From Octopus bimaculoides (lineage: Eukaryota), in NCBI RefSeq assembly GCF_001194135.2, contig NC_068987.1, positions 4,535,266 through 4,599,265 of the forward strand: a stretch of DNA of 64,000 bases, given 5' to 3'. Positions 3,042 through 63,620 of this stretch are shown piece by piece (positions within the stretch are counted from its first letter, which is position 1; the number at the start of each line of letters is the position of its first letter). The position numbers were made by a program, and so were the translations under genes. The notes beneath the pieces are model-generated. The model worked only from the letters and a program-made list of their open reading frames with translations, was not told the DNA's origin and searched no databases.

Positions 3042-3043
<2 letters not shown>

Positions 3044-3044
<1 letters not shown>

Positions 3045-10480: not shown

Positions 10481-11808
10481 ATATGTAAAAATCAGATCCA
10501 AGGATCAATGTGTAGGAAGTTAGTAAGCTTCAAGCAGTCTGTAGAAGGTATAAAAAAAACAACTTTAAGGAGCAATAGGGCTTATTGATGTAGAAGGTTG
10601 TGCATTTTTTCCATATCAAAGTTCAATAAGCTGAGGCCTTGTGACTAGTGAACCAGTCATCACCTCTCACCAAATACACATCACCCTGATGACCAACAGA
10701 CGCAAAATGCTAAGCAGATAAAAGCTGTATCTTAGGCAAGTATCTTTTAGCATTGCCTCGGGTTAAACAATGTCTTTTGAGTGAAATTTGGAAGGGGAAA
10801 ACTGCACAGAAACTCAGTGTGTATGTGTGGTTATATTGTATACAGTACATCTTCTGTATATGATCTACAGAGCAAATGTATGTATAATAATTTCTTACAT
10901 ATATATATACACACACACATATTTTTATGCGTGTGAGTAGATCCTTTGGTAAGAGATATAAAATATTGGTGAGAGAACATTGGTGGATAAACTGGTGCTT
11001 TTTGAATGAAGTCATTTGTGATATTTGTTCCACCCGAGTTGCGCAAAATCCCTTATCGCTCTTGCCATTGTAAATCCATGAACCAATGAATGGTCCACTG
11101 GGAACCTGTAACCAAAGACCGCTGCCATTCACAAAATAGGATATGAAATAAAAGTAAATAAATAAATAAAGCACCTAAGTATCTAGAAATAATAATAATA
11201 AAAAAAAAACAGGAAATTCTGAAATACAAAGAAGTTTTCCTGAAGATATAAGAGAACCTTAAGAATACAAGATACCCCTGAAATGGTATTAGAAAAATAC
11301 AAAGAATCCCGAAGCATCGTATAATTTATCCTAAAATAGAAATAAATTACAGGAGCAAATTAGTTTTAAGATGTATAAAAGAAGAATATTAGAATATCTT
11401 ATCATTTCTACAAAATTTCTTGACCGATTCTCATCCAAACTTTACTGCCACACTGACTTCTGACCTCTGACCCAACCACCTTAAAAAAAAAAAACCCACT
11501 GCCATANNNNNNNNNNNNNNNNNNNNNNNNNNNNNNNNNNNNNNNNNNNNNNNNNNNNNNNNNNNNNNNNNNNNNNNNNNNNNNNNNNNNNNNNNNNNNN
11601 NNNNNNNNNNNNNNNNNNNNNNNNNNNNNNNNNNNNNNNNNNNNNNNNNNNNNNNNNNNNNNNNNNNNNNNNNNNNNNATAAACAAAATCTAAGAAAGAA
11701 ATAAAGGTCAGAAACAAAAGAACAAATTAAAAAAAAAAGAAAAAAATTTCAAAGATTTTTATTATTATTATTTATTATTATTATTATTATTATTTATTAT
11801 TATTATTA

Positions 11809-12262: not shown

Positions 12263-14739
12263 TTATTATATCCCATGCTATAATAGTTAGCAGGGACATT
12301 GTTTTGAGGTTTGGTGGCAACAGGTCTCCTCAAATCTCAAGAGTCTTTCTTGGGATTCTTGCAGAATATAGAATGGTACTTTTCTGCTGGTCGACAATGC
12401 AAGTCTCAATTCTAATATGCTTTATTTATATAATTATTATTATTATTAATATTCTTATTACTACCTTGAAACAGTTATCTTGTATGTAAATGCTATGAAC
12501 TTCCTCTTGATTGCTACACTACTAACACTGTATGAAAAAAAAAGAAAGCTAACATGAATTTATGTCTTGCTTCATGAAATATTCAATTAATAAATTTTGG
12601 GTTCTATCATGCTTATGATTTCTAAAAAGAATGAAATAGTCTTATACATGATTACAACAAATTGGAAATTTTAAGAGCTTCATAAATAGGCAGACAACAA
12701 AGAGAATTAAATACATGTATTTTATGCATCATCTTATTCTTAAATTTCAGATTAAAAATTTTAATCCTACCAAATATTATGAAAAAATGATTATCTCCCT
12801 TGTAATAAATGGCCTGTAAGGGAAGATTTGTTTTATCATTATCATTATCATTTTTGAGGCAGTAAGCTGGCTGAATCATTAGTATGCCAGACAAAATATG
12901 TTGTGGCATTTCATCCAGCTTTATGTTCTGAGATCAAATTCTGCCAAGGCCAGCTTTGTCTTTGTCATTTCAGGGTCAATAACCACTGAAGTTAACTTCA
13001 CCTTTCATCTTTTAGGGGTCAATAATGATCAGTTGAACATTGGGGTCCATGTTATTAACTAACCCCCAAATTCCAGGCCTTGCATCTGTAGTAGAAAGAT
13101 GTTGCGTGGTAGGACGTTTGCTTCCCAACCACATGGTTCCAGGTTCATGGGTAAGTGTCTTCTATTATAGCCTGGGGGCCAACCAAAGCCTTGTGAGCAG
13201 ATTTGGTAGTTGGAAACTAAAAGAAGCTTGTTGTATATCATCATCATCGTTTAACGTCCACTTTCCATGCTAGCATGGGTTGGATGATTTGACTGAGGAC
13301 TGGCGAACTGGATGGCTGCACCAGGCTCCAGTCTGATCTAGCAGAGTTTCTACAGCCAACCACTTCGAGAGTGTAGTGGGTTCAGAATCACAAACTCAGG
13401 TTATGGTTGGTACCACAAATGTGTTAATGTTTCGCTATTGGAATTGGTTTTTTGACTCTTCATCATCATCATCATCATCATCATCAATGTCCATTTTCCA
13501 TGCTGGCATGGGTTGGATGGCTTGACAGGGACCAATGATTTTCAGGGCTGTGTTCAGTTCCAGCATCTGTTTCAACATGGTTTCTACAGCTGGATGCTCT
13601 TCCTAATACCAAACATGTTACAGCATGGACTGGATGCTTTTTTGGGCCACCTGCACTTTTGAGGTCACCAGGTAGTTTGCAGGTCTACAAGCCCAGTGGA
13701 GGGGGTCAGCTTCATGCTAGGAGATTATTATGAGAGAGTGGGGATGGGGAGCAGAACAGGTTCCTGTAGAAGGTTCTGCATAGCTACTCAAAAAATAAAA
13801 ACAAGCTTGAAGAATTGTACAAAATGCTTAGCACCATTTCTTCCAGTTCTCTTTGCCTTTCATCCCTTTGGGTTTGACAAAAGGAAGTACCAGTGAAGTA
13901 CTGGGGTCAATGTAATCAACTTGCTCCTTTCCTTCAAAGTTGCTAGCCTTGTGCTAAAATTTGAAACCATTTTTAGAAGTTTGGCAATATCCAGAATGGT
14001 TTAACTCAAACTTGTTTGTTTAGGAAATCGGCAAGTTCTTTTTAATCTTGTTTTGTTTTTAGTTAGGAGGTAAGCCAGTGCTTGTGGCTCATTATTGGCC
14101 CTCCAAGACTGAATGGAGGAAAATGGTATCCTCACACTTGGAAACTGGTTGGAATGCTTGTAAAAAAAATGGACTCTGCTAAAGGCTCCATCTTCAATGT
14201 AGCAGGTGGTGGTGTCAAATCAGATGACAGGTTTAGGTCTACCACCCAAGTAAGACATGGTAGGATTCGAACTAAGAAGACAAAGAATCAGAACAAACAC
14301 TTCAAGGCATCCACTTCAACGTTCTTACAGTTCTGCCACCTTATGTTGCTCTATGTTTCTATACACATTACATGTACATTCCATCACTCTCATCATCATC
14401 ATCATCATATGTCCGCTTTCCATGTTGGCATGGGTTGGATAGCCTGACTGAGGACTGGCCAGCCAGAAGGCTCAAATCTGATCAGGCAAGGTTTCTACAG
14501 CTGGATGCCCTTCCTGATACCAACCACTCCAAGAGTGTAGTGGGTGCTTTTTATGTGACACCAGCAGTGGTGCGGATGTATCTCGTCAGGTGATAAATAA
14601 TTACAATTCGTTAAAATAACTGTTCCGCAATGTAACTTCCCGTTTTGTAGAGAGAAAAACAGCCAGACGGAGGAAATATCTTCATTTAAATCGAAGATCA
14701 AAAATAAAATCACAGATGGCAAAAAGAGAAATGAACATA

Positions 14740-14976
14740 CACATCCCATGCTGGTGGCAAGTAAAAAGCGCCATCTGAGCATGGTTGATGCCAGTGTTGC
14801 CTGACTGGTCCCCCATGCCAGTGGCACATAAAAAGCACTCAGTACACTCTTAGAGTGGTTGGCATCCAGCTGTGGAAACCTTGTCAGATCAGATTGGAGC
14901 CTGGTGCAGCTGCTGGCTCACCAGTACTCAGTCAAACCATTCAACCCATGCCAGCATGGAAAGCAGATGTTAAACA

Positions 14977-15013
<37 letters not shown>
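14740..15013 (+). mobile_element. Family C copy
   Basis: Family C core with (GAT)n tail; inverted relative to the copy at 14392-14570. Confidence 0.75.
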
Positions 15014-15043
<30 letters not shown>

Positions 15044-15202
15044 NNNNNNNNNNNNNNNNNNNNNNNTAGCTTGCTTCTCAACCACATGGTTCCAGGTTCA
15101 GTCCCACTGTGTGGAACCTTGGCCAAGTGTCTTCCACTATAGTGTCAGGCTGACCAAAGCCTTGTGAGCATATATATATATATGCATTTATATATATATA
15201 TA

Positions 15203-15240
<38 letters not shown>

Positions 15241-18200
15241 TATATATAGTTATATATATATATATATATATATATAGTTAATTACCTTAATTGCTATTGG
15301 TTACAGTTAAGATCTTGTTAATTGGTAGACTGACATGAAGAAACCAGCAATTTTAACAGTATTGCCTTCAAGATTACATCTTTCTTTGTTTTTTCCTTCT
15401 CTCTCGGTGCTTCAAGAACTTTCCATTAAGTAATGATATACAATACTTCTTTATTCTATGTGGAAAGTTTGCTTATAGAAATAGTTGTAACCCATACAAA
15501 GTCTGTTTAGAAAGATTATTGTTTCTATTGTTTATGTGCAACAGAATAGATCGGTGAAAGCTTTATTTACTGTGTTATTTGTTTTGAGATATCTCTTATG
15601 AATGTATGGTGTTAAACAACACAGAAATATATCAGCAGCAGATGGAAATTGTTGAGCAATGGTGGTTGTATTGCAAAATGTGCATTTCTGCCTCCTTAGG
15701 CTTCATCAGTAGTAGGTATTCACTAGCAACTGCACGATAAGCCAAAAATCAGCTGCTAGCAAGGTTTCGTTTGCCTAGGAGTATAATAGAAGGCACCTGT
15801 CCAAGCTGCGGCACAGTGGTACTAAACCCATGGATAGGAAGCTAATTTCTTACGCATACAGTTACCCCCTGCACCTTTTCATACCAATGCATCATCATCA
15901 TTTAATGTCTGATGTTCAATGCTGGCATGGACTCAAACTGTGCGACAGAACCCAGCAAGCTGTGGGGCCACAATGAGCTCCAATGTCAGCTTTAGCATGA
16001 ATTCTACAGCTAGATGCCCTTCCTAATGCCAACCACTTAATTATAGAGTGTACTGGGTGCTTTTTCCAAAACGCTGGTGAATCATTACCTTATAAGGTGC
16101 ACTAGACTCCCCACCACCACCAAGTATCTGATGACCAATATTGATTATTTTGTAAAAGATATGTTTTATAAGAACACTTTGACATTTCAGTATTTATCAC
16201 ACGGAGGGAAGCATCTGAATCGCATGGGGTGGAGGGGGAGGAGGGAAAAACACAAGGAATGGAAAGCAACATGCAACAAAGGATGCAAAGCAAAAAAAAA
16301 AATAAAATAATGAGTGAGAGAAACAGAAAATTTTTTTTGTTTATTTCAGATAATAATAATAATAATAATAATAATCACAACAATTATACTGTTATAGTTA
16401 TTATTGTTGTTGCGGTTGTTGTTATTGTTATTGTGTTTATTCCAACAGTTGAATGAAATAGCTAAGCCATGGACAAACCAGCCAAGATGGAGAAGAATCA
16501 AATTTTAAAAGAATGTGGAGTGAGGTAATAATGTAGTTTAACTTTCTCACAAAAACAGTTCCTGACCATAAAGACATATATATTATATATATATATGTGT
16601 GTGTGTATATATTTCTTTAGTTATTTTGTAGTTTAACAATTACAGGAGGAAGATATGAAAATATATATAGGATCAGAAGAGAAAAAGAATTGGTTTCCTT
16701 CAGAGAAAAGAAAAAGGGACCTCAGATAACCACTCAATGAAAGATAAAACTCTCTCATTATATAAATTAATTAAAAAAAAAAATATGAAAGTGCTTTTAA
16801 AGCCTTGCAAAAAAGATTTGAAAACAAACCCACAATTGAAGACGAAGAGAAAGACACAATTCTACTTCAAGACATTGGCGTTGGCAATATCTATTCTTAA
16901 CCTCATCAGTAGATTTAATGTGGCCTAAAATTAAAACTGTTACATATTTTTCTTCACAATATTGGCAAAAGACCTGTCATTCAGGATGGATAGGAGGCTA
17001 TATGATTATATTGACCCCTGAGTCCAACTGGTACTTGGTTTATCAGCCTCCAAAGAATGAAAGGCAAAAGCTGGCCTTAACGGAATTGGAACTCAGAACA
17101 CAAAGTCAGAAGGAACGCCACTACATATTTGCCTTCAGTGTCTATGGTACAGTAGCTTCAACCATTCCCTTTTCAGCCAATGAGTATCGGTGGATGTATA
17201 TACTACAATTACATTAGATATTGTATTGAACATCAAAACAATTTAGAGGCAATATAACAGCTTTTAAGATGTTCAGATGTCAAATGGAGCATCCAAACAA
17301 TTTAGATATACGACAGTACTAAAAGATATTCTAACACTTAGAGCTGTTAGCTATCCTTTATTAAGATTTCTTTTAACATACACCAGGGCATTATATATAC
17401 ATACATCTCACCATTAAATTATACAGGTTATTGATTGCTTAGATATAATAATAACGATTATATATACATATACATACCGTAGATATATGACATGCATTAG
17501 ATATATCTAGTATGCAGATATACATATGACTATTATGTATATATCAACACTATTAATTGCTTAGATATACTACTGGTCATTACATTCACAACCACTGACC
17601 AGTAATATATACAGTTAGCCATTATATAAATATATATATATATATGCACACACATATATATATATCAACATTAGAGATATTTTGATAGCCAGGAGATATG
17701 TTGACTAAAGCATACATACATATTCTTAGCCAGTAAGATATATGATGTACGGACTACTGACCATTAGCTGAATAGGTAGATATACGGGCAAATAAGTTAA
17801 CAAGGGGTGTTGTTCTGAATTCAGAGTTAATTCGACATTTGCTTCTGAGAGAAAATAAGCAAAAACCTAGTGGTAATTGTTAGAGAGCCTCAATGAAAAA
17901 AAGAAGATAACGTCAAAGAAATTAAGAATTAATTTCATAAATTTAGTTTACATGCACAGAGGCAAGTCTGATCTTTGTAAGCAAAGAGACAACTATGGAC
18001 ATGTTTCAGTCTATTAGCCCTCCTCAGTGTGGTATTGTCTACTGAAACTGGTTTTGTTCAATTGCCAATATTTATATATATANNNNNNNNNNNNNNNNNN
18101 NNNNNNNNNNNNNNNNNNNNNNNNNNNNNNNNNNNNNNNNNNNNNNNNNNNNNNNNNNNNNNNNNNNNNNNNNNNNNNNNNNNNNNNNNNNNNNNNNNNN

Positions 18201-18731
18201 NNNNNNNNNNNNNNNNNNNNNNNNNNNNNNNNNNNNNNNNNNNNNNNNNNNNNNNNNNNNNNNNNNNNNNNNNNNNNNNNNNNNNNNNNNNNNNNNNNNN
18301 NNNNNNNNNNNNNNNNNNNNNNNNNNNNNNNNNNNNNNNNNNNNNNNNNNNNNNNNNNNNNNNNNNNNNNNNNNNNNNNNNNNNNNNNNNNNNNNNNNNN
18401 NNNNNNNNNNNNNNNNNNNNNNNNNNNNNNNNNNNNNNNNNNNNNNNNNNNNNNNNNNNNNNNNNNNNNNNNNNNNNNNNNNNNNNNNNNNNNNNNNNNN
18501 NNNNNNNNNNNNNNNNNNNNNNNNNNNNNNNNNNNNNNNNNNNNNNNNNNNNNNNNNNNNNNNNNNNNNNNNNNNNNNNNNNNNNNNNNNNNNNNNNNNN
18601 NNNNNNNNNNNNNNNNNNNNNNNNNNNNNNNNNNNNNNNNNNNNNNNNNNNNNNNNNNNNNNNNNNNNNNNNNNNNNNNNNNNNNNNNNNNNNNNNNNNN
18701 NNNNNNNNNNNNNNNNNNNNNNNNNNNTCTC

Positions 18732-20113: not shown

Positions 20114-20254
20114 NNNNNNNNNNNNNNNNNNNNNNNNNNNNNNNNNNNNNNNNNNNNNNNNNNNNNNNNNNNNNNNNNNNNNNNNNNNNNNNNNNNNNNN
20201 NNNNNNNNNNNNNNNNNNNNNNNNNNNNNNNNNNNNNNNNNNNNNNNNNNNNNN
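20114..20254. other. Assembly gap (141 N) within TnI
   Basis: Run of N. Other gaps: 2846-2855, 3910-4732, 11507-11678, 15044-15066, 18083-18727, 22453-22670, 27141-27150, 45906-46222, about 58397-58552, about 59509-60339. Confidence 0.95.
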
Positions 20255-20940: not shown

Positions 20941-21330
20941 AGCGTCACATAACCAGCCCACTCAAAAGTACCTTGGACCATAGGGCGACATGCCGTGCTT
21001 GAGGAGACCTATTGAGTCAAGTACATCAAAATCAAATCAAATCACAATCAAATGGAAATTGTAGTTGTGATCCCTGTGCTGGTGGCACGTAAAAAGCATC
21101 ATCCGAACGTGGCCGATGCCAGTGCTGCCTTGACTGACTTCTGTGCTGGAGGCACGTAAAAAGCACCCACTACACTCTTGGTGTGATTGGCGCTAGGAAG
21201 GGCATCCAGCTGTAGAAACACTGCCAGATCAGACCGGAGCCTGGTGCAGCCTCCTGGATTCCCAGTCCCAGTTGAACCGTCCAACCCATGCCAGCATGGA
21301 AAACGGACGTTAAACAATGATGATGATGAA
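20941..21330 (+). mobile_element. Long family C copy with extended 5' part
   Basis: Family C core plus upstream module gaggagacctattgagtcaagt...(aaatc)n; reverse-complement homologue at 25410-25790. Confidence 0.75.
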
Positions 21331-21389
21331 TGACACCTGCAACAGGTAATAATAAATACAAGAGACATCAATGAATCGTTTTCACTTAC

Positions 21390-21431
21390 TTGGCTTCTGT
21401 TTTGGATACTTTTTTGAGAACAGGTTTGACA
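21390..21431 (-). CDS. TnI: Troponin I exon (inhibitory region)
   Basis: ctcttttacag|T...AA|gtaagt, 42 nt, phase 2-2. Encodes (F)VKPVLKKVSKTEA(K), the GKFVKPxLKKV inhibitory motif. Confidence 0.95.
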
Positions 21432-22397
21432 CTGTAAAAGAGGAAATTGAGAAATGATTAAGGTACGATTATAGAAAGAACAAAGTGACAAAAAAAAAAT
21501 AAAGCGAGAGAGAGAGAGAGAGAGATAATGTTAATGATTTCTGTGATAATTCTAATTTTGACACAAGGCCAGCAATCTTGAAGGAAAGGCATGTCAATTA
21601 CACTGACCCCCAGTACTTGATTGGTACTTATTTTATCGAACCTGAAAGGCAAAGTTGACCTCAGCAAGATTTGAGCTCAGAACATAAAGATCCAGAAGAA
21701 ATTCCACTAAGCTTTTTGTCTGGAATGTTAATGATTCTACTGCTGGCTCATCTATGGTAATAAGTGGTCTTGTGAAATCTCTTAGCAAACCCTAACAGGT
21801 GTAGTTATAGTATTTACATTTATTAGGCTGTGAGGTTCAGAAAATTGTTTTGCAGTCACATGGTTTCAGGTTCAATCCATGCAGTGGAACTGAAGAGTCT
21901 TTCTACTATAAGTCCATGCCAACCAATGCCTTGGAAGTGAATTTGGTTGACGGAAACTCAGTGTGGGAGTCCATCTTATAGAAATCTTTGTCTTTCAAGT
22001 CACTTGGTGACCTCACCAGTACTGGTGCCATGTGAGAACGCACTCTGTAAAGAAGTTGGTGTTGAAAAAGGCATTTGGCCATAGAAACCATGTCAAAGCA
22101 GACAGTGGAGCTTGGCAAGGTCCTTTGGTTGGCCAGCTCCTGTCAAACTGTCCAATCCATACCAGCATGGAAAACTCATGTTAAATGATGATATATATAT
22201 ATATAAAAGACCAACTAAAGAGGTCTTCAGTCCACTAGCTAATCATGTTTTGGACATGTCCATGAAAAAAATCATGAAGTCTGAGTAACAATGCTATAAG
22301 TGGCAACTATAACCTTGTATGCATTAAATATTTACTCTTCCAAAGATATTGAGTCTAGTTTCACTTTGTAAAATTACCATATACATAACACAACTCC

Positions 22398-22452
<55 letters not shown>

Positions 22453-22670
22453 NNNNNNNNNNNNNNNNNNNNNNNNNNNNNNNNNNNNNNNNNNNNNNNN
22501 NNNNNNNNNNNNNNNNNNNNNNNNNNNNNNNNNNNNNNNNNNNNNNNNNNNNNNNNNNNNNNNNNNNNNNNNNNNNNNNNNNNNNNNNNNNNNNNNNNNN
22601 NNNNNNNNNNNNNNNNNNNNNNNNNNNNNNNNNNNNNNNNNNNNNNNNNNNNNNNNNNNNNNNNNNNNNN

Positions 22671-22800: not shown

Positions 22801-22844
22801 AATTTGCCTCTGGTGTCATTAACCTTTATTGTGAGGTCATTGAT
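22801..22844 (-). CDS. TnI: Troponin I exon
   Basis: ctttgttttcag|ATC...TT|gtgagt, 44 nt, phase 0-2. Encodes INDLTIKVNDTRGK(F). Confidence 0.95.
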
Positions 22845-24278: not shown

Positions 24279-24379
24279 CTCAAATTCTTGTCTTCTGATT
24301 TTAAATTCACAATCATAGACTTCTTCTTCAAGCTCTGCTGTTTTCGCATGGAGTTTCTTTACCAGATCTTGCAACTGTG
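24279..24379 (-). CDS. TnI: Troponin I exon (IT-arm coiled coil)
   Basis: ctttttacag|CA...GAG|gtactc, 101 nt, phase 1-0. Encodes (A)QLQDLVKKLHAKTAELEEEVYDCEFKIRRQEFE. Confidence 0.95.
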
Positions 24380-26147
24380 CTGTAAAAAGATGTAGCAAAA
24401 TTGGTAACAAGAGCGGAATCGGTGACTGGTAAAAACATAGTCAGGTCTGGTTTACCTTACCTTTTATTTAATCTCTTTTTAGCTGCTCCTGCTTCAGCAA
24501 TGTTAAACATAAAGAATTTTTTTTAAAAAAAAACCTAGAACTTGGATTCATATTTTTTGGAAAATAACACTTTCAGAGCTGGAATTTAACAAATCTCTGG
24601 CATTTTATTTCTTAGGAAATAATATTCTTCAAATTTTGGAACAAATACAACAAATTTAGTGGCGGGTGGGGAGGGGGGTTTAATCAATTACTTTGGCTCC
24701 AGTGCTCAGCTGATACTTATTTAACTGACCCCAAAAAGATGAACAGCAAAGTCACCCTTGATGGAATCTAAGCTCAGAGCAAAGGGAACCAGAAAAATAC
24801 TGTTAAGCATTTTATCTCAAAGATTTTTTGAGATAATAATTTTGGTTTCAAATTTTTGGTACAAAGCCGATAATTTCAGGGGTAATTTGGTTACATCGAT
24901 GCCAGTGCTTGACTGGTATTTATTTTATCAATCTCCAAAAGGATGAAAGGTAAAGTCAATCTCAGTGGAATTTGAACTCAGAACATAAGGAATGCTGCTA
25001 AGCATTTTGTCCAGCATGCTAACGACTCTGCCCTACCTTAGGTAACAATATTAAAATGCAGAAGTTATATAATAATAATTTTTAGGTCTAGTAACATTAT
25101 CTGTAAGATAAAACGTGTTTTTAGTATCCACATCTATGTTACGTTTCAACTGGTTTCATCTCCATATCTTCAAGTGTCTTAATCCTGAATGTAAATAAGG
25201 CATCAGGTAGGATTTGTACCAAGAAATATCATTTCTAAATAGGCAAGGTGTGCATGGGTGTGTGGTGAGAAGCTTGCTTCCAACCACATGGTTTTGGGTT
25301 CAGTCCTATGGTGTGGCACCTTGGGTAAGTATCTTCTACTATAGCCCCAGATCAACAAAAGTTTTGTGAGTGGATTGGGTTAATGGAAACTGAAAGTTTA
25401 TCATATATTATCATCATCATCATCATCACCATCATCATTTAACGTCCGTTTTCCATGCTGGCATGGGTTGGATGGTTCCACTGGGGTCCGAGAAGCCAGG
25501 AGGCTGCACCAGGCCCCAGTCTGATCTGGCAGTGTTTCTACAGATGGATGCCCTTCTTAACACCAAACACTCCGAGGGTGCTTTTTATGTGCCACAGGCA
25601 CAGGGGTCAGAAGAGCTGGCATCAACCACGATCGGTTGGTGCTTTGTACATGCCACCAGCATGGAAGCCAGTCAAAGCGGCACTGGCATCGGCCACATTC
25701 AAATGGTGTTTTTTATGTGCTACCAGCATGGGGCTCACAACTACAATTTCCATTTGATTTGATTTTGATTTTGATGTTGATGCACTTGGGATTTGAACTT
25801 AGAACATAAACAATCATAACTAAATACTTAAAGACATTTTGTTTGGTGTTCTACCATCGCTGCCAATCCCCTGTTTTAATGTAGATATAAATATAAGGTT
25901 AATAACCTCAAAAATTACATCCATTGATTTATACTTATAGCAAACAATATTTCATCTTGGAAGATATTCAAATACAAACATTGTTATTTTCTGTTCAGTT
26001 TCAATAACTTGTTTTTAAGAGAAGAAACATTTCCTTAAACATACAGCTTTAGTTTGTGTCATGATTCACTTACATCACAACTATAGAAATCTGTTTTCAT
26101 TTTAGCTTTATTCATTACTGTGAATTTCATTATTTGGCACCACTTGA

Positions 26148-26340: not shown

Positions 26341-28742
26341 GACATTCTTTGAATCTTTTGAGAATGTTGTGGCACCCTCCAAACACTGGACTAACTTCTT
26401 GGCAATTCTTGAAATAGTTTCTTAACAACTGATCTTTTGTTTTTGTAATTAATTATTTTGTAAGCGTTTTACTCAGTATAATTTACAGAAAGTATTGAGT
26501 AATTATTTCAGTTTGAAGTGTATAATTGCTTTTGTTATAACTTGACATAAAAACAAATATATGTATGTGTGTCTGTGTGTGTGTCTGTGTGTGTTTTTTT
26601 GTGTCCGTGCGTGTGTGTGTGAGTGAGCATTTGTGTGTGTGCCTTCAAGGCAACAGAAACCAGAGTGATGGTCAATCCCACATCTAGCAAACATATAACA
26701 TAGGACCACATGTAATCTGGACTAAGCTGGAGCCATCCAACAGCAAAGAGTTCTATACCTTATATCCTTGCAGAGATCGTCGCAAGTTAAGGTACGTATT
26801 GTGTTCACTACAACATGAAATACTGATTTTGTGATTTGGTTGCAACTGGTACTTACTACACCTCTACATGGGGGCCAACAAATCTGCTAGAAATAGTAAC
26901 CAAATTCTTTCATATATTCTAAATGCAGTGAAGGTCACGTCTAGAATGCATTTAATCCTGGGTCTGTCAGATCAAAAATGACCGTGGGTTAAACACCCCA
27001 CCATCATTACCAATAATAACATCCAACTACTCACATGCTATAGGTCTATTTCAGCTTGAGTAACGCTGAGCTTGAGCTAAGCAACAACATCAACAATAAC
27101 AACAAGAGAAATAACAATAGAAAGCATACAAGAAGAGACTNNNNNNNNNNGATAGAAGCAAGAAGACGGAATGAACAGGCTTTAATCACAAATCACAACA
27201 ATTGTTTCTGTGCAATGGTAACAACTGTTAGTTGCTGAGTTTTCCTTGTCATACTATTACATAAATTATTTTATAAATAATTACATAAATATGATCAGGT
27301 GTGCAGCTTTGAGGTATATATATATACATATGTACATATACACACATACATATGTGTTTATACACATGTGTTGGTGAATTTAGTAAGCACGTATAATTAT
27401 ACATTACATACTCTTTCAAATCATGTCTTTCATGTTCTGACTATAATTTGTTATGAATCAAAGACAGAGTAAAGACAATATTGTAAAGTCAGTTTACCAA
27501 AGTCAGATGAATGGAGGCTTACACTACGTTGAAGACTCTGTCCATATTCTTCAATAAATTCCTTGATGTATTTTATGGTAATATAAGATTACAGAAGTAA
27601 ACTTGCACAGAAAGACATACAAACTACTATGCAGTTGAATAAGTTGTAGATATGAAGTATTAGCTGTACTGCACTCTCAAATGATAGAATGGACTTTTGT
27701 TGACTTGGATGTCATTAAGAAAATGGAAGTGTGGTCAAGGAAGACACTCCCACAAAACAATGACCAGAATAATTTGAAAGAGCTGGACCTGCCCTGAGGT
27801 AAAACCCAGCATAAAGACAATACCAGATGGTTTTGTTGATGATGAACTGATTTCAAGAACAGCATAACAGAAAGAGCATTTTTAAGAGATAGCCATGGAG
27901 ATGCTTTAGCAAGTTTTTTTTTTTTTTTACCTCTGACCCAAGATGGGATAGAATAACAAAAGTTGTCATCTATACATGCAGTTACATCTGAAAAACAAAA
28001 GACATTCAGGAGTGGGGGGAAATGTAAGAGTTGGGGAAGTGGAATAAGAGAGTAAAATTAGGAATGTGAAATTTTTAGAGGAAAAGAAGTGGGGAGAGAG
28101 AGAGAGAGAGAGAGAGACCAATGGATAGAAAGACAAAAAGAGAGAAAAAGACAAATATATACGGAATGGGGAGGAGGGAGAGATTTTCACCAGGACATGC
28201 ATCAATGATTTGGGCTCATTGTTGACATTAAAAAAAGGGGGCAAGTTAAATAAAACCAAGTCAAGGCAAAGCAAATACTGACAGGGCTAAGATTAAGTTC
28301 ACTCTTAGCCATATTAGCTCCATCTTTCCATTTTTTAAGTTGTATAATTCTTTTTTTTTTTCTTTTGTTTAATGACACACAATGTAAAGAAAGTTTTGAC
28401 TTGGATCAAGGAAGGAAAAAAATTAAATTTTTGTAAAAGGGAAAAGAGATTTTATAAGAGTCTTTGAACAAGGACTGCATTCCAGGAGACGATGGGAAGA
28501 GAAAAAATAGATTAAATATAAAGACATGGGATTGGTTTAAGATAAATACAAAGACTGGAGATGGAAATAAAGGGAGGGAATTATAGCAAGATAAGGATTA
28601 TAGAAAGAGGAGAAAAATAAACATTTCAATCCAGTTTGCTGAAAGTTTTTCTAAGTAAAAACACACACATGGTATGGCACCATCCTGCAGGGAAGAGGTA
28701 TGCACATATCGGCATGCACAGCACACAGCAGGCAACGCCTAC

Positions 28743-28863
28743 CTTCATTTAGACCCTCGGTAATCAATGGCTCAACCCTCTCGCAAATGAAGCGTTCTTT
28801 TTCTTCAGCTTTCCGTTTAGCTTCATTTTTCAAGTCTTCAGCAGCCTTTTGCATAATAAGTTT
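28743..28863 (-). CDS. TnI: Troponin I exon (N-terminal TnC-binding helix and start of IT arm)
   Basis: tgtttctag|AAA...GAAG|gtaggc, 121 nt, phase 0-1. Encodes KLIMQKAAEDLKNEAKRKAEEKERFICERVEPLITEGLNE. Confidence 0.95.
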
Positions 28864-31885: not shown

Positions 31886-31987
<102 letters not shown>

Positions 31988-32939: not shown

Positions 32940-33002
<63 letters not shown>

Positions 33003-33443
33003 GATGTTGGTGATAGTTTCTTAAATAAACTTAAATCATTATCTTTCAATATTTTGAGATATATTACAGTTGAGTAGAATAGGAAATTCTGATAATTATT
33101 CATTTTCTAAGACTATTAAGTAAGGGACCCCAAAGTAGTTAACATTGCATTGTGGGTAGAATTTGGATTACAAACTCAGTCTTAGTGAGAAGTTTCCTGT
33201 ATATTTAAGTGCCTCCCACAACAACAATAATAATGATGATAACGATGAAGATTATGATGGGGCTAAATATCCATAATAAAACTATTTGCATTAAGAAATT
33301 TGAGGTTCGTCAATAGTTTGCTGTATCTCATTCAATTTAGAATTACCTTCATAAAAATTAATATTATTTATACATTTATGGAATCATACATGTATGTCGA
33401 TCAGAACCAATAGGAATTTGGTATTCAGTTGAGATCACAGTAC

Positions 33444-33600
33444 CTTTACTTAGCTCTTCGAGTTTGTCAGGTAAAAGAACTATACGTTGTGAAAGTATTA
33501 TTTTCTTCCTTGTCTCCTCATCAGTGTCATCTAAGTCTAACTGACTGACATCAGTTAATTTTGTCATTTTCTCTCCTGCAGCACGGGCTTCATGAGAAGG
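33444..33600 (-). CDS. TnI: Troponin I candidate alternative (mutually exclusive) exon
   Basis: ttgtcttttgtttgtaatag|CCT...AAAG|gtactg, 157 nt, phase 0-1, open. Encodes PSHEARAAGEKMTKLTDVSQLDLDDTDEETRKKIILSQRIVLLPDKLEELSK. The 3' half aligns with the 28743-28863 exon. Confidence 0.7.
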
Positions 33601-36321
33601 CTATTACAAACAAAAGACAAACACTCATGCACCAGTGAAACTAAAGCAGCAAGCAAGGAACGGATCGATTATGCAAGACATAAATAAAATGATACAAATG
33701 GCAGAAGACAAGACAATACAGCGGGAAGACAAAACAGAAATTTTGTACCTTTTGGTCATTAAAATTATTACTTGCAATTGATGAGGGTTAAAAATGAATC
33801 TGAATGAAGTATAAAGGATGGGAAAGCCACTTCAGGAAAAGGAAAAGTTCAGGACACGCAAAAAATTTGTTATTTAATGTGGGAAGAAGAACACACAGAT
33901 AGCAAATGTAAGAACATCCAACACACAAACAGAACAGGGAATGGAATGATGTACAATACATATATGAATAAACAGCCCAAAATATATTAAGCAATCATTA
34001 ATTCTACTTTTTTATGTTTTTGTGTGTTGAAAGTGGTTGTAATAGAGAAGAGTCAAAGCGTCCAGTAACTTGAGTCAAATGAGTCTTGTCTGCAATCCAG
34101 TTTGGACTCTCAATTGCAAACTTCACTTTATTTAAATTTAACCAACAAACATCATACAGTTTCATTTTCCACTTTTACCCCATAAATCTGAAATCTTGTT
34201 CCAAGGGGGATGATATCAGTGAGTCAGAGGTTGGATTGGGTTGCATTGATAACTGACTTTAAGCCAAACTGTTGACTGGAACTTTTTTGGGGTGTTATCA
34301 ACAATGTCTGTGAATGCAACAGCAGATACTATGTAACAGGATATTCTCAATATGTACAATGTTTGTGTCATTATCCTCTTAAAGGAGACAGAGTTGGCAT
34401 GGCACCATCAGAAGAGGTTTACAAGATCTCTGCTTATAGAATCAGGGCAGGTTTGCAGCACAGTGTCTAGGTTGCATGTGGGTGGGGGAAATTTGATGTG
34501 AAAGGGTAGTGGTGGATGAGGAGCAAGCAGGTATCCATTACAACCTTGCCTGCAGCCGACCATCGGATGTGGTCAGCATTTGTGAGAGGCATGGTGAATT
34601 CATTGGTCAGAGCTGGCTGGCTCGACACACCCCTGATGAATTCTGTATAAGATGGATGAAGTACAAGACAGATGGAGAACAATATCATTTACACAGAAAG
34701 AAATAGTGTTGGTCGGGGTCAATAAGTAGATTGTTGATGCAGAAGAGGAAGAATGTTGGGGACAAAACTGAATTCTGGGGCTCATCAGAATTGAAAGAAT
34801 GTTGGTCAGAGAATGAGAGAGAGAGGTGAGGGGGAGCTTGCAATTTGTACATTAAGAAAAGTAAAAGAAAGCTGAGCTTTTGCTTACAGCCATGTTTAAA
34901 CGGATGGAGTGACAGATGATGATAAAGTTGATATATTAGTATACTGAAGAATAAGCATATGGTAGGAACACTACTGCCGAACGAAAGACTTACTAATCTT
35001 GTGTGTGTTACTAAACAGTTAATAGTTCACAGTGTTACTAATTAATAATTCATTACTTATGTAATGCAGTGGTGAATTATTAACTATTTTACACACACAC
35101 AAATATGACTGTAATCTTTCAGATGAAGACTAAATCGTTAACTATTTATGTGTGTCAGAATCAATAACATTTATGTGTTATTTTGTAAGATTCTTGATGT
35201 GAAATCGAGTGTGGTGAAACAGATATTGTTATACTTGGGGATGGTCATCTTTTGCCAATAAACACATGCAGTGTTTATTTGACCTTCACTTTTTTCCACG
35301 AAACAGTAAAGTAACATTTCAAATCGGTTCCAAAATATTTTTACGCTTGTTTGTTTTGGTGATGAAGTTTCCCATGTTCAAAACGTTTTCAATTTCCCCA
35401 AAACAAGCTTTAGGGGATGCACCTGCACTCCTTGCACCCCTTCTTCACAAGCCTTTGGTAGTATTTAGTCCTACACACCAGCATCTGCAGATTGTTTATG
35501 ACAAGAACTTGGCTAATCGAGTTGACCAATCACAAAGCAGTTTACAACATATATGTGGTGTTGACTTTCGGAGAAAGGTCAGCTAACAAGTGATCACAAG
35601 TTTGTATTGGGTCTCTTTAAATCATGTCTCGAAACACTCAGGAGTGATAACAGTTTTTATTGTAATTTCAAGTTCTGGATCAAATTCAGTTGTTTATTGT
35701 TCTTGTGTCTGCTTAGTAACTTTACATTGCTTTACATTGCCTTACATGTTCACCTCTGCCTTCATAGAATGTTATATAGGAAAGAAAAGGAGGGGAAAAA
35801 GACAATAAGTGCTTTTTCTACATAACTACATGATCTAATTAAACACAGAGCAATCACTACAATTAATTAATCCAATTGAAACTATCTTCTACATGTAAGA
35901 ACCAAAACAACAAACAACATAGCCGTCACTTGCAAGCGAGTATGACTCGGTAACAGACTTATTCTTTGGCTATTTGTTATGGATGTCTTATGTAGTCATG
36001 AGCACTCTCTCAGAACAACCAGGATATGACAAGTGGAGGAAGACAGAGCTGCTTCAACACTCATCTGGATCAGCAGATTGGAGTAACGTGAAATAAAATG
36101 AAATGCCTTACTCAAGGGCACAGTGCACAAGAATTGAACTCAAGATCTTATCACTGTGGGCCAAATACTCCAACCACAAAGCTAAATGCTTTTCTTTTCC
36201 TACATGTAACAGCACTAACAGTGACGAGCATGAAACTACTACATGTGGTCGTTTAATTTAGCAATTATCTGAAGCAAGCAGTTTTATAATTTCAATTCAT
36301 GAAGATTTAAATGAAGATGAC

Positions 36322-43881: not shown

Positions 43882-43977
43882 CTTGAGTAGTTTCTTCTTC
43901 TCTGGAGACAGGCCACCCAAACCCTTTCGTTTGCCCTTCTTTTTCTTCTCTTCCTCCTCTAGCCTTCGCCGGGCAGC
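43882..43977 (-). CDS. TnI: Troponin I exon
   Basis: ctctctgcccag|GCT...AAG|gtactg, 96 nt, phase 0-0. Encodes AARRRLEEEEKKKKGKRKGLGGLSPEKKKLLK; the KRKGLGGLSPEKKK motif is characteristic of molluscan TnI. Confidence 0.95.
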
Positions 43978-45268: not shown

Positions 45269-48200
45269 TTTATTATATTAATGAATATTTGTTTTGTGGT
45301 ATTGAATTTTTTTTCTGTTGGTGGTTTTTTTTTTATAGATTAATTAATTAATTTTTTTTCTTTTTTTTAATGTCATAGAATTTAATGTAGGCAATATGCC
45401 GTCACACTGGTTCCAGTAATTTAGCCAAAAATTTGCTACAAAAATCAAACAAAAAAAAAATATAAAAGAACTATCTATCATATTACTTGCTACATAGAAA
45501 GATTTCACTAAACTTGGAAAAAGTGGTGGGGAAAAAAACATTGGATAAAAGAAAGAAAAAAAATTTAAAAACAAATTATATTAAAAAATAATTAAAATTA
45601 AAAATGTAATTTCACGGCATCATTCAAAGGTTATATCATTGAGTCTGTGAGAATTGTTTAGATAACTTCAGCCAAATGTCATATCAGCCATTCCTTCATT
45701 TGAAAACCCAGCATGCAGAGCATAGAATACTTTCACACATAGATCTACAGCACAGTTTCCTAATTGGTTTTAACTTATTTTTGGTTCAAACACATTTTTG
45801 CTTTGTTTTTATTATTACTTTTTTTTTTTTTTTACTTTGAACTTTAAAAGTGGAAGAAAGAATCTAAGAATTTATTCAAAAGAGCCATTTATCCCAAAAT
45901 AGAATNNNNNNNNNNNNNNNNNNNNNNNNNNNNNNNNNNNNNNNNNNNNNNNNNNNNNNNNNNNNNNNNNNNNNNNNNNNNNNNNNNNNNNNNNNNNNNN
46001 NNNNNNNNNNNNNNNNNNNNNNNNNNNNNNNNNNNNNNNNNNNNNNNNNNNNNNNNNNNNNNNNNNNNNNNNNNNNNNNNNNNNNNNNNNNNNNNNNNNN
46101 NNNNNNNNNNNNNNNNNNNNNNNNNNNNNNNNNNNNNNNNNNNNNNNNNNNNNNNNNNNNNNNNNNNNNNNNNNNNNNNNNNNNNNNNNNNNNNNNNNNN
46201 NNNNNNNNNNNNNNNNNNNNNNATATATATATATATATATATATACATACATATATATATGTGCGTGTGTGTGAGAGAGAGAGAGCGAGAGATAGAGAGA
46301 AAATAAAGAGAAGAATAAAGAGCCAAAGGATTTAGCTTGAGGTATTTTGTTTCGTATTTTGTTTAAATATAAAATTCTTTGATATATCTGAAATTAGGAG
46401 TTAACAAATCAAGATCAGAAAATTTCTTTTCTGTCATTGTTGAAGGAGTGTATGTCATTTCATTTATTTCTCTTACTTTATGAATTATGAAAAATAAGTT
46501 TTTTTTTAAATACTTCTATATTTACAAATATAATATCTGTAATACTAAAAAATATATTTTACACTTCTTTTTTTTTTTCACTCTAAATTTTTAAATGTCA
46601 AGTTATTTGGTTCCACCATTTCAATATCATTCCATAAAAGAAAACTATTATTGAATATCAGATTAATAGAAAATGTGGAAGGGAATGGAGACTAAGAAGA
46701 TGAGGATAAATAAATAGATCGTTATTACATAATTGAGAAACTGGAAAACAATCAGTATGAGATCAGTGATGGAGTTGAAAAATCTCACAGATAGATAAGA
46801 TAAAATAGGATGGACAGAGTTGTTGTTTGCACCGTTCATAGCACTAGTAAAAGAGTGAAAAAGGTGCTTGGCATATCAAAATGGATCACAGAGCATCAGA
46901 AAGTTTATGCACCATGCTGGAGCTTGGTTTCAAGATACAAGTTTCTATTGTTTATATAAAGTAGTGGTCAGGACATAATCTTACTCTCTCTTATACTTGC
47001 TAGTTAATCCCAAATGCTAGTTAATCCCCAAATGCACTTAATCTTTCTCATTGCTTTTAGTCTCAACCTTTCAAGGAGCATTACCATTTAGACCACAGAC
47101 TCCCCATTTTTTCCAGCACACTTTACACCAAATAAAGATATGAAAATGCTTCAAATGCATTTATGCTTTTATTCTTTTATACATTTCAGTCCTAAGGCTG
47201 TGGCCATGCTGGAGCACTGCCAGTGGAAATTATCTGTCAGATTTCTAGATATTTAAAATATGGAAAATTTATAAGTAAGTCTTTAATCAACTAATGGAGT
47301 TATCAAGACTTTACCATTTTTCTTTAACATGTTTCAGCCATTAAACTGTAGCCATGCTGGGGCACTTCCTCAAGGGTTTAGTTGAACAAATCAATCTCTA
47401 ATACTTATTTTTTAAGCCTGGTACTGATTATATCAGTCTTTTTTGCCATCTGCTAAGTTACAGGCACACAAACAAACCAAAACCAATAGCCAAGTAGTGG
47501 AGGAGACAAACACAAAGATACACACAGACACACGGACACACACACATATCAGGGACTGCCACACAGTTTCCATCTACCAAATTCACTCAAGGCATTGGTC
47601 AACCCAGGGCTACAGTAGAAGACATTTCTCAAAGTTCCGTACAGTGGGGTAGAAACTGAAACCAGCATCTGGACCAGATTGCCGTTGTACGGCTTCTTCC
47701 CCCTTTCTCCCAGTTTTAGAAGATTGCTTCTGTAACTAACACACACACACACATACAAAACCACACACACATAAACAGCTCTATAGAACTTCAACACCAT
47801 GTTGTTTAATTGTCCATCTAAGTACCCACAGTAAATTATTTCTATTAGTCAACATCTTATAAAGTTTCACTAAATGATATTTCATGTAGTCTCTGACAAT
47901 AAGTCACTCCCCAAAAGGGGTTGTATTATTATTATTAATCCTGATACCAGTTGCCCTTGATGATGAACCAGGGCAGACATGGGTCTACATTTAATTTTAA
48001 TAAACTTCTATCTGCTCCTTTCAGTAGTTTTCTCCTAGTAATGACACTGTTCTGGCCACCCCTTACAAAACAGTTAGAAAAGTATTTCTATTGATGCGTT
48101 CAATTCAGTTACTGATAAAGATGACAAGAAATTGTACAATCAGTTCTTCCTCATCAATATTCATATATCTTTACTTTTGCAAAAGGAAGATAATGATATC

Positions 48201-52040: not shown

Positions 52041-52073
<33 letters not shown>

Positions 52074-55000
52074 GTTGGCATGGGTTGGATGGCTTGGCAG
52101 GAACTTGCAAGCCCAGGGGCCACACCAGGTTCCATTGTCTGTTTTGGTTTGGTTTCTATGGCTGGATGCCTTTCCTACATTACAGAGTGTACTGAGTGCT
52201 TCTTACATGGTGCCAGCATGGTTGCTTTTTATGTGAAAATGTCAGATTCAAATAATAAACTTTGATGGATGCAGGTAGAACGCCCCTTCATTTGGCTTGT
52301 AGGTAAATGTTGAAGCTTCCATGAAGCTGCCTGCTCAGTCTTGGCGTCACTTTTGTGAACTGATATCATGAATAAGTTTGAACAAGTCTCTCTTCACTGA
52401 CAATAATAATGCTCCAAGTAAGACATGAAGACCACAACTTATTGTTCACCCTTCATTTTAAAACAATTATTAAAATTTTTGCAGACGTAAGAAACCAATA
52501 ATTGCTTGTTTCCTTGTTAAATATTTATTAATATCAGTGTGAAAAGGCAAAAGAAAAAAAAATACAAAGAAATTGACTATAAAAGTAAATCTACAAAAAA
52601 TATATTCATGTGACAACAAATATCTTGATAAATAATTAAATAATAAGGCAAACAACAAGAGAATATTCCAGAACAAATAAGAAAAATGATTGAACAAGAA
52701 GAAATATAAATTAACAACGGTTACAACTATTACCATTTTAAGATTTAGAATTTAAATGGGATTAGAGATGAAAGACTATAAATATATATAGTGAGAGAGA
52801 GAGCTAAAGATGTAAAGGAAGAGGGTGTAAGGTAGAAACCTAAGAAAGGAAGAAGAAGAATGAAGAAGAAGAGAAGAAGTGAATAATTCAAAGAATCTTC
52901 TATAATATCTTATTTGACTCTGATGAATGCAAATACAGCAGAACCATGATCAAAACATTCCAACCACGACCATCCTGTCTGTTCAGGGATTTCTACAACT
53001 AAATTATCTAATATATTCTTTTCTTTTTTTTATTTTAAGGTGTTAGGATGTAATTTGAGGGCAATTTGGATGCTTGTTCCAGTTGGTTGAGTGATGATGT
53101 AGAGGCTCCCTTCTTAGTTCGTTGATATGTATTATTTTCTGGTGCCTGTGTTACAGACGTGTTTAGGAAGGAGACCCAAAATTCCCTCAACATACCCCTG
53201 CACTTAACTGTAGGATATCAAACTCCACCTGTGTCACATATTGCTACAGCTTCATACATTGGAGGAAAACTGATAGCTTACTCTTTTAGGGGTTTGTTTC
53301 TATTTCTTCCCCCATTAAGGCTAAACCTTAAAAGATAAAAACATTTTTTTTTCTTTTGGTATCAGAAAATATTTTTAAAAATATAAACATCCAACATGGC
53401 ACAGTTTTCGGTTATCAACCAACAAGAGAGAGGAAGTTTGAAAGGTGTTGTAAGCAGGGGGGAATGAAGCTACCACTGAAAGCCTCTCCTTTATTTTCAA
53501 GCATTTTTCCAAAGAAAAACTTCCCCCTCCCCTGGTCAGCTGTCACTACCATCACCCTGCTATCACACTGTCATAGATAGTATTGGAGAGGAAAGAGCTG
53601 TTCGCAACAACATCAACAACCTGCCAAGCAGTAGTAGCAACAGCACAGGCTGACAGGCAATAACAATACCACTGCCATAAGCTCAATGACCAGTTGGCTG
53701 ACCAAACACCACCACCGATTTTCCACAGTGGTCGGCAACTCCATCACCTTTGAAGGTGGCACCAGCAGTAACAATACTAACAGCAGTCACAGCAAAGCAA
53801 CTGCAAGGACGAATTCTTTGACAAGTGCAGCAGAAATTGAAGAGCAATTAAAAGTGCAAAACAGGAGCTAAGAAAAGCCAGAAGCTTTGTACAGAATGCA
53901 AGTAGGAAAATCGCCATAGCCATAGATCTGGAGATGATGGAGAATGCCAAGAAGTGTACGATGACCAACAAGTGCATATGCATAAGCACAAAATGTCCAT
54001 GGATAGGAAATCCGTATTCGGGTGTAGAATCGATTGAATGCAGTGTGGAATTGGAAAAATAACATGGCATTCATGTAACAGAGGACAGTGGTGATCAGAT
54101 TCCTTTGTGAAAGCAAACCAACGAGCTACATCAATGCTCCAGTTGAGGGTGAGAACTTTATCCTCATTCTCAACAAGTAGTAAAGGTGAGGGTGGTAGAT
54201 ATGCCACTAGAAATAAAATAAACACCCAGTAACTAGTGGTAGCCATTTTGAATGACAAGAACGATGAGGTAACCATCTTGGTGATATAAATATTATGCCA
54301 GAATTTTAAAAAATGGTGGATTATAGGAACAGAACTCCTGATCTAGACAAGTCAGAAAAGGCTAAAAAATGTCCTTGACCTAATCAAGCTGCCAAACAGC
54401 AGTGGAAGGCAGGAGACACAGGTGCCACACATGTGATTTGACCAACTGCCTAAGGGCCTTCTGCCAATGGCAGAGGTCAAATGAGAGAAGGCTAACACCA
54501 CAACCACACCAACAAAAACAACAACATTGACAACACCAGCAGCAACAACAGCAACTGCAGAAGCGGTAACAACAGAATCCCACCTCCTCCCAACAATAAC
54601 AGAACTTGCTACCACAATCAGAAGAAGCCTCTCACCAGTGCTCTTCCCCCAAGTAAGCACGCACACACACATGAACTCACATTACTCTCTCTTCCACTTC
54701 AAACATTTGATTTCAAAACCTTTTCATGTGACAAGGTCAAGATGGTAGTCCCGACACAAGGGTAGAAAACCATTTATCAACCAGTCACGTAACCACACAA
54801 CTACCACCACCACCACCACAAAACAAGGACAGTCAAACCTACAACCATACCAGCAACAATAACAAAACCACAAACACCACAATTACAGTAAAACACACAT
54901 AAAAAGAACAGCAACATCAACTGCCAAACACGAAAATTACAGGGAACCATTGAGGTCCATAATACAACATGCAAAAAACAAAAACAAAAATACTAAAAAA

Positions 55001-58403: not shown

Positions 58404-58552
58404 GACGGGCTTCTTTNNNNNNNNNNNNNNNNNNNNNNNNNNNNNNNNNNNNNNNNNNNNNNNNNNNNNNNNNNNNNNNNNNNNNNNNNNNNNNNNNNNN
58501 NNNNNNNNNNNNNNNNNNNNNNNNNNNNNNNNNNNNNNNNNNNNNNNNNNNN

Positions 58553-60779: not shown

Positions 60780-60827
60780 CTCTTCCTGTCTCTTTTTCCT
60801 TTCGGCCTCTTCGCGTTCCTCTTCTTC
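60780..60827 (-). CDS. TnI: Troponin I, N-terminal E/R/K-rich exon
   Basis: tgttgtgtag|GAA...GAG|gtaaga, 48 nt, phase 0-0. Encodes EEEEREEAERKKRQEE and joins in frame to the exon at 43977. Composition matches the charged N-terminal extension of protostome TnI. Confidence 0.75.
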
Positions 60828-63219: not shown

Positions 63220-63620
63220 AGTTTATGTTCTACTGATGTATTTCTGGTTGGTCATTGAACTCAAACTAGAACTTTCTCTTGAAAAGCTGCCAACCTGCAG
63301 CAAGCTACCTTATTTGCTGTCAATTCAAACTGACGACATTCCAGTCTGCTATTTTAAAAGATTTCTTATTCTTGCTTCTAATCCTGTCCTTCTATGTTTC
63401 TTTATGATTCTTCTGATGTACATCTCAGATTATCCCTTTTGATACCAATCCACTTGAGACCATCTCTACGTCGGAATACAAACAAAAGTCGCTCACCCTA
63501 AAAGTTGAGGGTGGAGAGGGAAGTGTTTGCCTTGTAGTAAGTTTGTTGAAAGGTGAGTGAATGTTGGAAGAATCGCCAATGTGAAAGGACCAATTCTGAA
63601 TGTGCACCTATAAACAAAAG
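63220..63620 (-). mobile_element. LINE 5' part with start of APE endonuclease (decayed)
   Basis: NKKSFKIADWNVVSLN at about 63325-63370 matches the APE N-terminal (I/V)ATWNVRSL motif; in-frame stops follow. Confidence 0.55.

Follow-up and report, generated by a model that had tools for sequence, protein, structure and literature searches.

The troponin I (TnI) gene of Octopus bimaculoides contains a genuine alternative coding exon, here designated C' (33600..33444), which in spliced RNA takes the place of the exon that encodes helix H1, the conserved anchor of TnI to the C-lobe of troponin C (TnC). In the samples examined, C' occurs strictly together with a large upstream exon ending in ..CVIHLQSGKR, and it marks a separate class of transcripts, not a switch inside the muscle messenger RNA (mRNA). 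The DNA analysed (hereafter the window) is a stretch of 64,000 nucleotides (nt) of contig NC_068987.1 (assembly GCF_001194135.2, positions 4,535,266 to 4,599,265 of the forward strand); the gene lies on its minus strand, and the window holds the middle part of the gene. The observations as a whole are best explained by a coupled C' class that would give rise to a TnC-uncoupled, probably non-muscle, TnI-derived protein, a reading that we regard as likely and whose functional part is what we infer.

The existence of C' is established by RNA evidence, namely contigs assembled from public RNA runs (coded X1, X2 and so on, from organisms coded A, B and C) together with raw reads. Exons are named A, B, C', C, D, E and F, and their coordinates are listed in Table 1. 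A 214-nt contig in each of the runs X1, X4 and X10 of organism A spans exactly 33444..33602, and a contig of X14 (organism C) covers the same span. On the 3' side, these contigs run on with CACAGTTGCAAGATCTGGTAAAGAAAC, the start of exon D, so that C is skipped and the junction 33444>24379 is confirmed. On the 5' side, they carry GAGGCCGAAAGGAAAAAGAGACAGGAAG(AG), which maps to 60809..60782 inside exon A and not to exon B. The A>C' junction is also present in raw reads of X23, where all four reads of this kind are A>C'. The C' contigs are unbranched across both junctions in X1, X4, X10 and X14; neither another partner of C' nor a C'>C joint was assembled. Contigs containing exon B, on the other hand, run unbranched from A through B into C in X1, X4 and X7, and an A>C junction that skips B is present as well. 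Thus, at least three spliced forms exist across the region: A-B-C-D, A-C-D and A-C'-D.

A first-pass annotation of this DNA had described C' as an open exon of 157 nt with a strong acceptor, an AG/gtactg donor (the slash marks the splice site), phase 0 in and 1 out, and a counterpart of 121 nt in exon C; all of these sequence statements proved correct. The donor hexamer gtactg is identical at C' (AAAG/gtactg) and at the end of exon B at 43882 (CAAG/gtactg), and C' is open in frame 0 only. A segment of its 52-aa peptide reads KIILSQRIVLLPDKLEELSK, and MTKLTDVSQLDLDDTDEETR and IVLLPDKLEELSK are candidate peptides by which the isoform might be recognised. However, the 15-kb intron in which C' lies contains 83 phase-compatible open segments of 100-219 nt with AG..GT bounds, and because comparable segments are this numerous in the same intron, the sequence alone is insufficient to establish C' as an exon. 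It is the RNA contigs, along with the Pfam Troponin score of the C' isoform given below, that bear out the earlier claim of a real alternative coding exon of the TnI gene.

The same annotation had held C' and C to be mutually exclusive, and this is what the contigs show. The two exons lie 4.6 kb apart in the same intron, share the same phase and both join A and D; C' contigs lead into D and C contigs lead into D, contigs being liable to lose rare forms. When the exons are spliced in silico, C' or C singly keeps the frame into 24379, and both together, or neither, give stop codons, in agreement with the annotated frame shift of the tandem; the tandem junction itself (33444>28863) is the C'>C joint missing from the four runs above. 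At the least, frame incompatibility would keep C and C' exclusive, with nonsense-mediated decay as the presumed next step. A search for competing RNA structures that might enforce it found only complementary (ATT)n and (AAT)n microsatellites. Both lie in the intron that separates C' from C, at 31886-31987 and 32940-33001, with ~1 kb between them, and form perfect complements along 62 nt; we regard this as a probable coincidence of low-complexity sequence and not as evidence for a selector mechanism.

Exon A has three upstream partners, all of them beyond the window. The first (..TTAAACC ATG TCT) contains a start codon and yields a short N-terminus, the second (..KREAEERRKR) provides a Glu/Arg-rich N-terminal extension, and the third is the large exon ending in ..CVIHLQSGKR. 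This third partner matches a site in the O. sinensis protein XP_036360332.1 (915 aa) at which ..AHCLIHWQSGKK is followed directly by EEEEREEAERKKRQEE, and which there closes a region of ~500 aa rich in Ser, Asn and Asp. Three similar motifs, VCNKWPPEKAT, VVKRWPHAQTA and VRGRWPPEVDL, occur in that region, and a Pfam scan of XP_036360332.1 returned Troponin (residues 776-901) as the sole domain, with none in the ~500-aa region.

It is with the third partner that C' is found. One 1865-nt contig of X14 (depth 37.9) links at least 1134 nt of upstream sequence, exon A, C' and 526 nt of downstream sequence, and exon B, when sought in this run, was absent. A single unbranched contig of 659 nt in X2 (organism A) likewise joins the large upstream exon, A and C', and X5 contains only the joints of the upstream exon to A (depth 24.8) and of A>C'>D (38.6). 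Where samples are mixed, the depth of the joint between the large exon and A follows that of C' (16.1 and 19.8 in X1, 28.7 and 27.8 in X4, 17.6 and 19.2 in X10), and the depth of the joint between the Glu/Arg extension and A roughly follows that of A>C (6.4 and 4.8 in X1, 11.6 and 12.4 in X4, 18.6 and 10.5 in X10). C' is thus always accompanied by skipping of B and by the large upstream exon, whereas B and C go with other 5' exons. Because C' joins A without B and is coupled to a long upstream region, its use is not a simple switch of the muscle isoform.

The abundance of the two classes differs sharply from sample to sample. The C' form is the only one detected in X2, X5 and X14 (depths 5-38), the last of which represents a second species; given the absence of muscle-type junctions or TnI, these samples are likely of non-muscle origin. 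In two runs with very high canonical depth, X7 (1391) and X23 (~1000 at 6% sampling), C' accounts for at most ~1% or occurs only in unspliced intron contigs. No contig with A>C' or with the large upstream exon was found in X8 (A>C 716, A>B 300), where exon A was the place examined, nor in X3 (A>C 348), where exon A was again the sole place examined and words of the C' exon are present in the run.

The product of A-C'-D-E-F is recognised by the Pfam model PF00992 (Troponin) with a score of 87 bits (cut-off 26.2) and is aligned from residue 39, as compared with 118 bits and residue 14 for the A-C form. Its top matches in the PDB are cardiac and fast skeletal TnI. The H2 (IT-arm) helix and the inhibitory peptide, INDLTIKVNDTRGKFVKPVLKKVSK (RGKFxKPxLKKVSK), both invariant or nearly so across TnIs, are encoded by exons D-F, which are common to all isoforms; the G, K, F, K, P, L and K of the peptide are invariant columns of alignment A1.

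What the C' isoform lacks is the segment upstream of these exons. In an alignment of 55 non-cephalopod TnIs over the exon-C segment, the motif L(I/L)(M/R)xKAAExLK is conserved, and it is absent from A-C'. The canonical octopus forms carry the longer H1 motif, (L/M)(S/T)PE(K/R)KKxLxxL(I/L)(M/R)xKAAExLK, as do nearly all of the 55 sequences (two truncated entries are without it), but A-C' does not. In octopus the full motif reads GLSPEKKKLLKxLIMQKAAEDLK, and the C' isoform is without all of it, since the part GLSPEKKKLLK, carried by exon B, is also missing. When the exon peptides were compared individually with the PDB, exon C found cardiac TnI as its best match, aligned at helix H1, whereas the C' peptide found no TnI chain. 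The 5' half of C' has a net charge of -3, compared with +2 for the 5' half of C, and its helical hydrophobic moment is 0.39, compared with 0.49 for the canonical H1. Single-sequence AlphaFold2 predictions, weak evidence in that the two exon peptides were folded in isolation, gave one confident helix for exon C (predicted local distance difference test (pLDDT) score 90.8), and for C' a coil at residues 1-27 with short helices at 28-37 and 44-50 (pLDDT 64.9).

Several claims of the earlier annotation are upheld by these comparisons: the conserved H1 helix that binds the C-lobe of TnC is removed with H2 and the inhibitory peptide retained, and the 5' half of C' is acidic and predicted to be non-helical, its amphipathic helix being lost. 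As for the proposed TnI isoform with altered TnC anchoring, the loss of the H1 motif holds good, but a simple switch within the muscle isoform is not supported.

It might be argued that an amphipathic segment other than H1 (GEKMTKLTDVSQLDL) still allows C' to bind TnC or some other EF-hand protein, and that the isoform marks a specialised type of contractile cell and not non-muscle cells, with Ca2+ regulation altered rather than lost. The hydrophobic periodicity M12/L15/V18/L21/L23 in C' would suit such a role, H2 and the inhibitory peptide are kept, and a cell type that is rare in its tissue would agree with the low depth at which the isoform is seen. Nonetheless, the hydrophobic moment is lower than that of H1, residues 1-27 are predicted as coil, the isoform has neither the invariant LIMxKAAE motif nor exon B, and samples exist that contain C' and no canonical isoform. 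We therefore think this alternative improbable.

The ancestry of C' is less evident than its splicing. Pairwise comparison of the C' and C peptides gave p=0.31 for the local and p=0.21 for the global alignment, and p=0.046 for chosen 3' halves; the two exon regions share no nucleotide similarity. Against a profile of the 55 non-cephalopod TnI segments, to which exon C scores 65 bits, C' scores 7.5 bits (shuffled sequences, 0.0 +/- 1.4), a value reached by 4 of 2000 shuffles (p about 0.002). The match is collinear and end-anchored, with RKKIILSQRIVLLPDKLEELS placed on profile positions 21-40, and the matching part comprises residues 31-51 of C', the 3' third, which corresponds to the TnI linker motif. 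At the same linker site nematode TnIs have KILSQRIIALPD (nematode reading QKILSQRIIALPD), as compared with KIILSQRIVLLPD in C'. Judged from these similarities, C' probably arose long ago as a duplicate of exon C and has since diverged strongly, the linker being kept and the 5' two-thirds replaced or changed beyond recognition. The fit of the 3' part to the TnI profile agrees with the exon duplication put forward by the annotation, but the pairwise alignment on which that proposal was based is not significant. A transposon origin of C' was also considered, but C' proved to be single copy in the window.

Organism C (X14) shows the same splicing pattern, and its C' differs at 33514 (synonymous) and at 33501 (Ile>Leu); organism B has an identical copy of C', which is unspliced. 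A word-index protein search with C' returned only the short canonical TnI P0001, and a HMMER scan of 1.84 billion representatives returned canonical matches only, among them O. sinensis XP_036360332.1. An exact look-up of two guessed C' isoforms of O. sinensis gave no match, which says little either way. The genomic contigs of relatives cover 1.5 kb around exon D and do not reach C or C', and a search for DNA runs of other species with C' returned organism A only.

Such results might suggest that C' is a young, lineage-restricted piece of intron that was exonised and is spliced as noise or as a neutral variant, its protein having no selected function. In large protein libraries and metagenome contigs no homologue of the C' peptide was detected, the peptide alone matches no TnI in the PDB, its pairwise similarity to C is not significant, and chance open AG..GT segments are numerous in the intron. 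However, C' is the sole isoform assembled in three samples, one of them from the second species; its splicing and frame are kept in organism C with one synonymous and one conservative change; its 3' third fits the TnI linker profile collinearly; and its use is tightly coordinated with a specific 5' exon. On this balance we consider neutral exonisation improbable. The remaining alternative, that of the first-pass annotation, in which C' simply replaces C in muscle TnI mRNA (B-C'-D) and so switches TnC anchoring between muscle types, appears very improbable: the phases fit with B>C'>D in frame, the B and C' donor hexamers are identical and Drosophila wupA has mutually exclusive exons 6a-d (PMC8011728), but the junction 43882>33600 that it predicts was not assembled in any sample examined, exon B contigs run unbranched into C only and C' contigs unbranched into A, all four raw X23 junction reads are A>C', and C' is at most ~1% in X7 and X23, the two high-TnI samples where it was examined, so that the model is already contradicted in the samples examined.

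We thus return to the coupled transcript class as the preferred explanation. The large upstream exon, A, C' and D are spliced together with B and C excluded and the frame intact, and the product would be a long protein in which the ~500-aa Ser/Asn/Asp-rich region precedes a C-terminal TnI module with the H2 helix, which binds troponin T (TnT), and the actin-binding inhibitory peptide. H1, the anchor to the C-lobe of TnC, is lost from this module: neither exon B nor the 5' part of C is included, and an acidic segment for which no helix is predicted stands in their place. A protein of this kind could not anchor to the C-lobe in the usual way and would act uncoupled from TnC and Ca2+. A part in Ca2+ activation has been reported for the structural site at which molluscan TnI binds TnC (PMC5963113, citing Tanaka et al. 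2005), and loss of this site is the reason to expect a TnC- and Ca2+-independent protein. The isoform would be made mainly in cells without muscle isoforms, and may serve there as an actin/tropomyosin-associated protein. A fuller version of this proposal, which we offer only tentatively, is that of a large non-muscle protein in which a disordered region of ~500 aa with three (K/R)WP(P/H) motifs is fused to a TnI core that carries an acidic segment in place of the TnC anchor, and which might act as a Ca2+/TnC-independent actin/tropomyosin factor produced by coordinated choice of 5' and internal exons.

Several points weigh against this explanation. The term 'non-muscle' has the missing muscle-type junctions as its one basis, the tissues of the runs being known by code. 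A possible M-x2-L-x2-V-x2-L-x-L pattern in the 5' half of C' might allow some altered TnC binding. Conservation of C' is seen in one species, so closely related (2 differences in 157 nt) that the ratio of nonsynonymous to synonymous substitution rates (dN/dS) is of no use, and no C'-like protein was found among the 1.84 billion representatives (HMMER) or the metagenome contigs, where coverage of cephalopods is poor. The C' transcripts were followed up to the large exon, and the sequence 5' of that exon lies outside the window. Moreover, contig assembly loses rare variants, and a minor B>C' or C'>C form may exist; finally, the C' isoform is known at the RNA level, and its protein is predicted.

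The closest parallel is wupA of Drosophila, which, like the octopus gene, is one TnI gene with many isoforms, having mutually exclusive exons 6a-d, optional exons and two start sites (PMC8011728). Some wupA isoforms act outside muscle, with roles in cell polarity, in proliferation and in nuclear localisation, and wupA is thus a precedent for non-muscle TnI isoforms (PMC8011728). The octopus gene differs from it in that the segment exchanged is H1 and that the choice is coupled to an N-terminal region of ~500 aa unrelated to TnI and to skipping of exon B. The mutually exclusive exons of fly TnI cover the H2 (IT-arm) segment, and to our knowledge all fly TnI isoforms keep H1. Another parallel is provided by the long and short TnIs of molluscs (52K and 19K in scallop), which the octopus gene resembles in having a form with the Glu/Arg-rich extension (..KREAEERRKR>A) and a short form (ATG-TCT>A); a short form also occurs in a relative (P0001). 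TnI isoforms of the scallop type are known to differ in the N-terminal extension only and to keep the TnC-binding H1, whereas in the octopus C' isoform H1 is replaced.

In O. sinensis, the orthologous gene is represented by XP_036360332.1, annotated as 'uncharacterized protein DDB_G0287625 isoform X15'. This protein consists of the Glu/Arg extension, the ~500-aa Ser/Asn/Asp-rich region ending in ..CLIHWQSGKK, and then A, B, C and D. The gene so named is a troponin I gene, and the name DDB_G0287625 presumably derives from the Asn-rich low-complexity region. XP_036360332.1 joins the large region to A-B-C and has no C' sequence, whereas the samples with the large exon studied here show A-C' instead; the automated RefSeq isoforms of O. 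sinensis may already include C'. In vertebrates, H1 of cardiac TnI (cTnI) is seen bound to the C-lobe of TnC (PDB 1J1D/1J1E, 4Y99). Exon C aligns to this helix, whereas the C' isoform aligns well only downstream of it, and no counterpart of the conserved hydrophobic face of H1 can be made out in C'.

Alternative splicing of TnI, mutually exclusive exons and variants of the N-terminal extension are all known, and a search of the literature on alternative exons for H1 in cephalopod or mollusc TnI found nothing specific. What appears to be new is the replacement of H1 by an exon whose use is tied to a large N-terminal region unrelated to TnI; we found no description of such an exon. We know of no TnI isoform that does not keep the H1 helix tying TnI to TnC. 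In octopus, a robustly expressed isoform removes exactly this helix, and what is left of TnI, the core that binds actin and TnT, is linked to a large region of unrelated sequence. Provided that the protein is made, it would be a natural 'TnC-less' TnI, and its production would involve long-range coordination, the choice of a 5' exon being tied to that of an internal exon that lies >27 kb further downstream.

Table 1. Exons and splice sites of the octopus TnI gene located in the window (a slash marks a splice site)
Feature	Coordinates	Strand	Length and phase	Sequence encoded or present; remarks
Exon A	60780..60827	minus	48 nt, phase 0/0	EEEEREEAERKKRQEE; upstream partner of C', B and C
Exon B (cassette)	43882..43977	minus	96 nt, phase 0/0	AARRRLEEEEKKKKGKRKGLGGLSPEKKKLLK; 154-nt contigs in X1 and X4, 126-nt contig in X7
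Acceptor of C'	33601..33620	minus		ttgtcttttgtttgtaatag; contigs and 4 raw reads change to exon A sequence exactly here
Exon C'	33444..33600	minus	157 nt, phase 0 in / 1 out	52 aa, PSHEARAAGEKMTKLTDVSQLDLDDTDEETRKKIILSQRIVLLPDKLEELSK, plus one base; spliced RNA contigs in X1, X4, X10 and X14
Donor of C'	33438..33443	minus		gtactg (AAAG/gtactg); contigs go from 33444 into CACAGTTGCAAGATCTGG, the start of exon D
Exon C (canonical)	28743..28863	minus	121 nt, phase 0 in / 1 out	KLIMQKAAEDLKNEAKRKAEEKERFICERVEPLITEGLNE; helix H1 and linker
Exon D	24279..24379	minus	101 nt	(A)QLQDLVKKLHAKTAELEEEVYDCEFKIRRQEFE; H2 / IT-arm helix; downstream partner of both C and C'
Exon E	22801..22844	minus		INDLTIKVNDTRGK(F); start of the inhibitory region
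Exon F	21390..21431	minus		(F)VKPVLKKVSKTEA(K); remainder of the inhibitory region

Exon B is a symmetric cassette and carries the conserved GLSPEKKKLLK. Transcripts that join A to C without it are abundant (347.9 in X3 and 716 in X8), and transcripts of a relative show both arrangements, P0001 being without exon B and P0009 and P0010 with it.

The window comes from a gapped scaffold assembly and contains eleven runs of N (assembly gaps), several of which lie beside dinucleotide repeats (2846-2855, 3910-4732, 11507-11678, 15044-15066, 18083-18727, 20114-20254, 22453-22670, 27141-27150, 45906-46222, 58417-58552 and 59509-60338). Very high RNA depth, with many mismatches and joints that go back, was recorded at 62082-62195, 63108-63221 and 63792-63905; these sites look like multi-mapping repeats or microsatellites and not like exons of the TnI gene. 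A family of interspersed repeats resembling short interspersed nuclear elements (SINEs) is represented by at least 10 copies on both strands with 70-86% identity, some of them with chance open reading frames of ~100-130 aa; the copies include 21099-21491, 25423-25638, 2866-3026, 3043-3235, 13237-13656, 14390-14989, 52071-52218 and 62092-62230.
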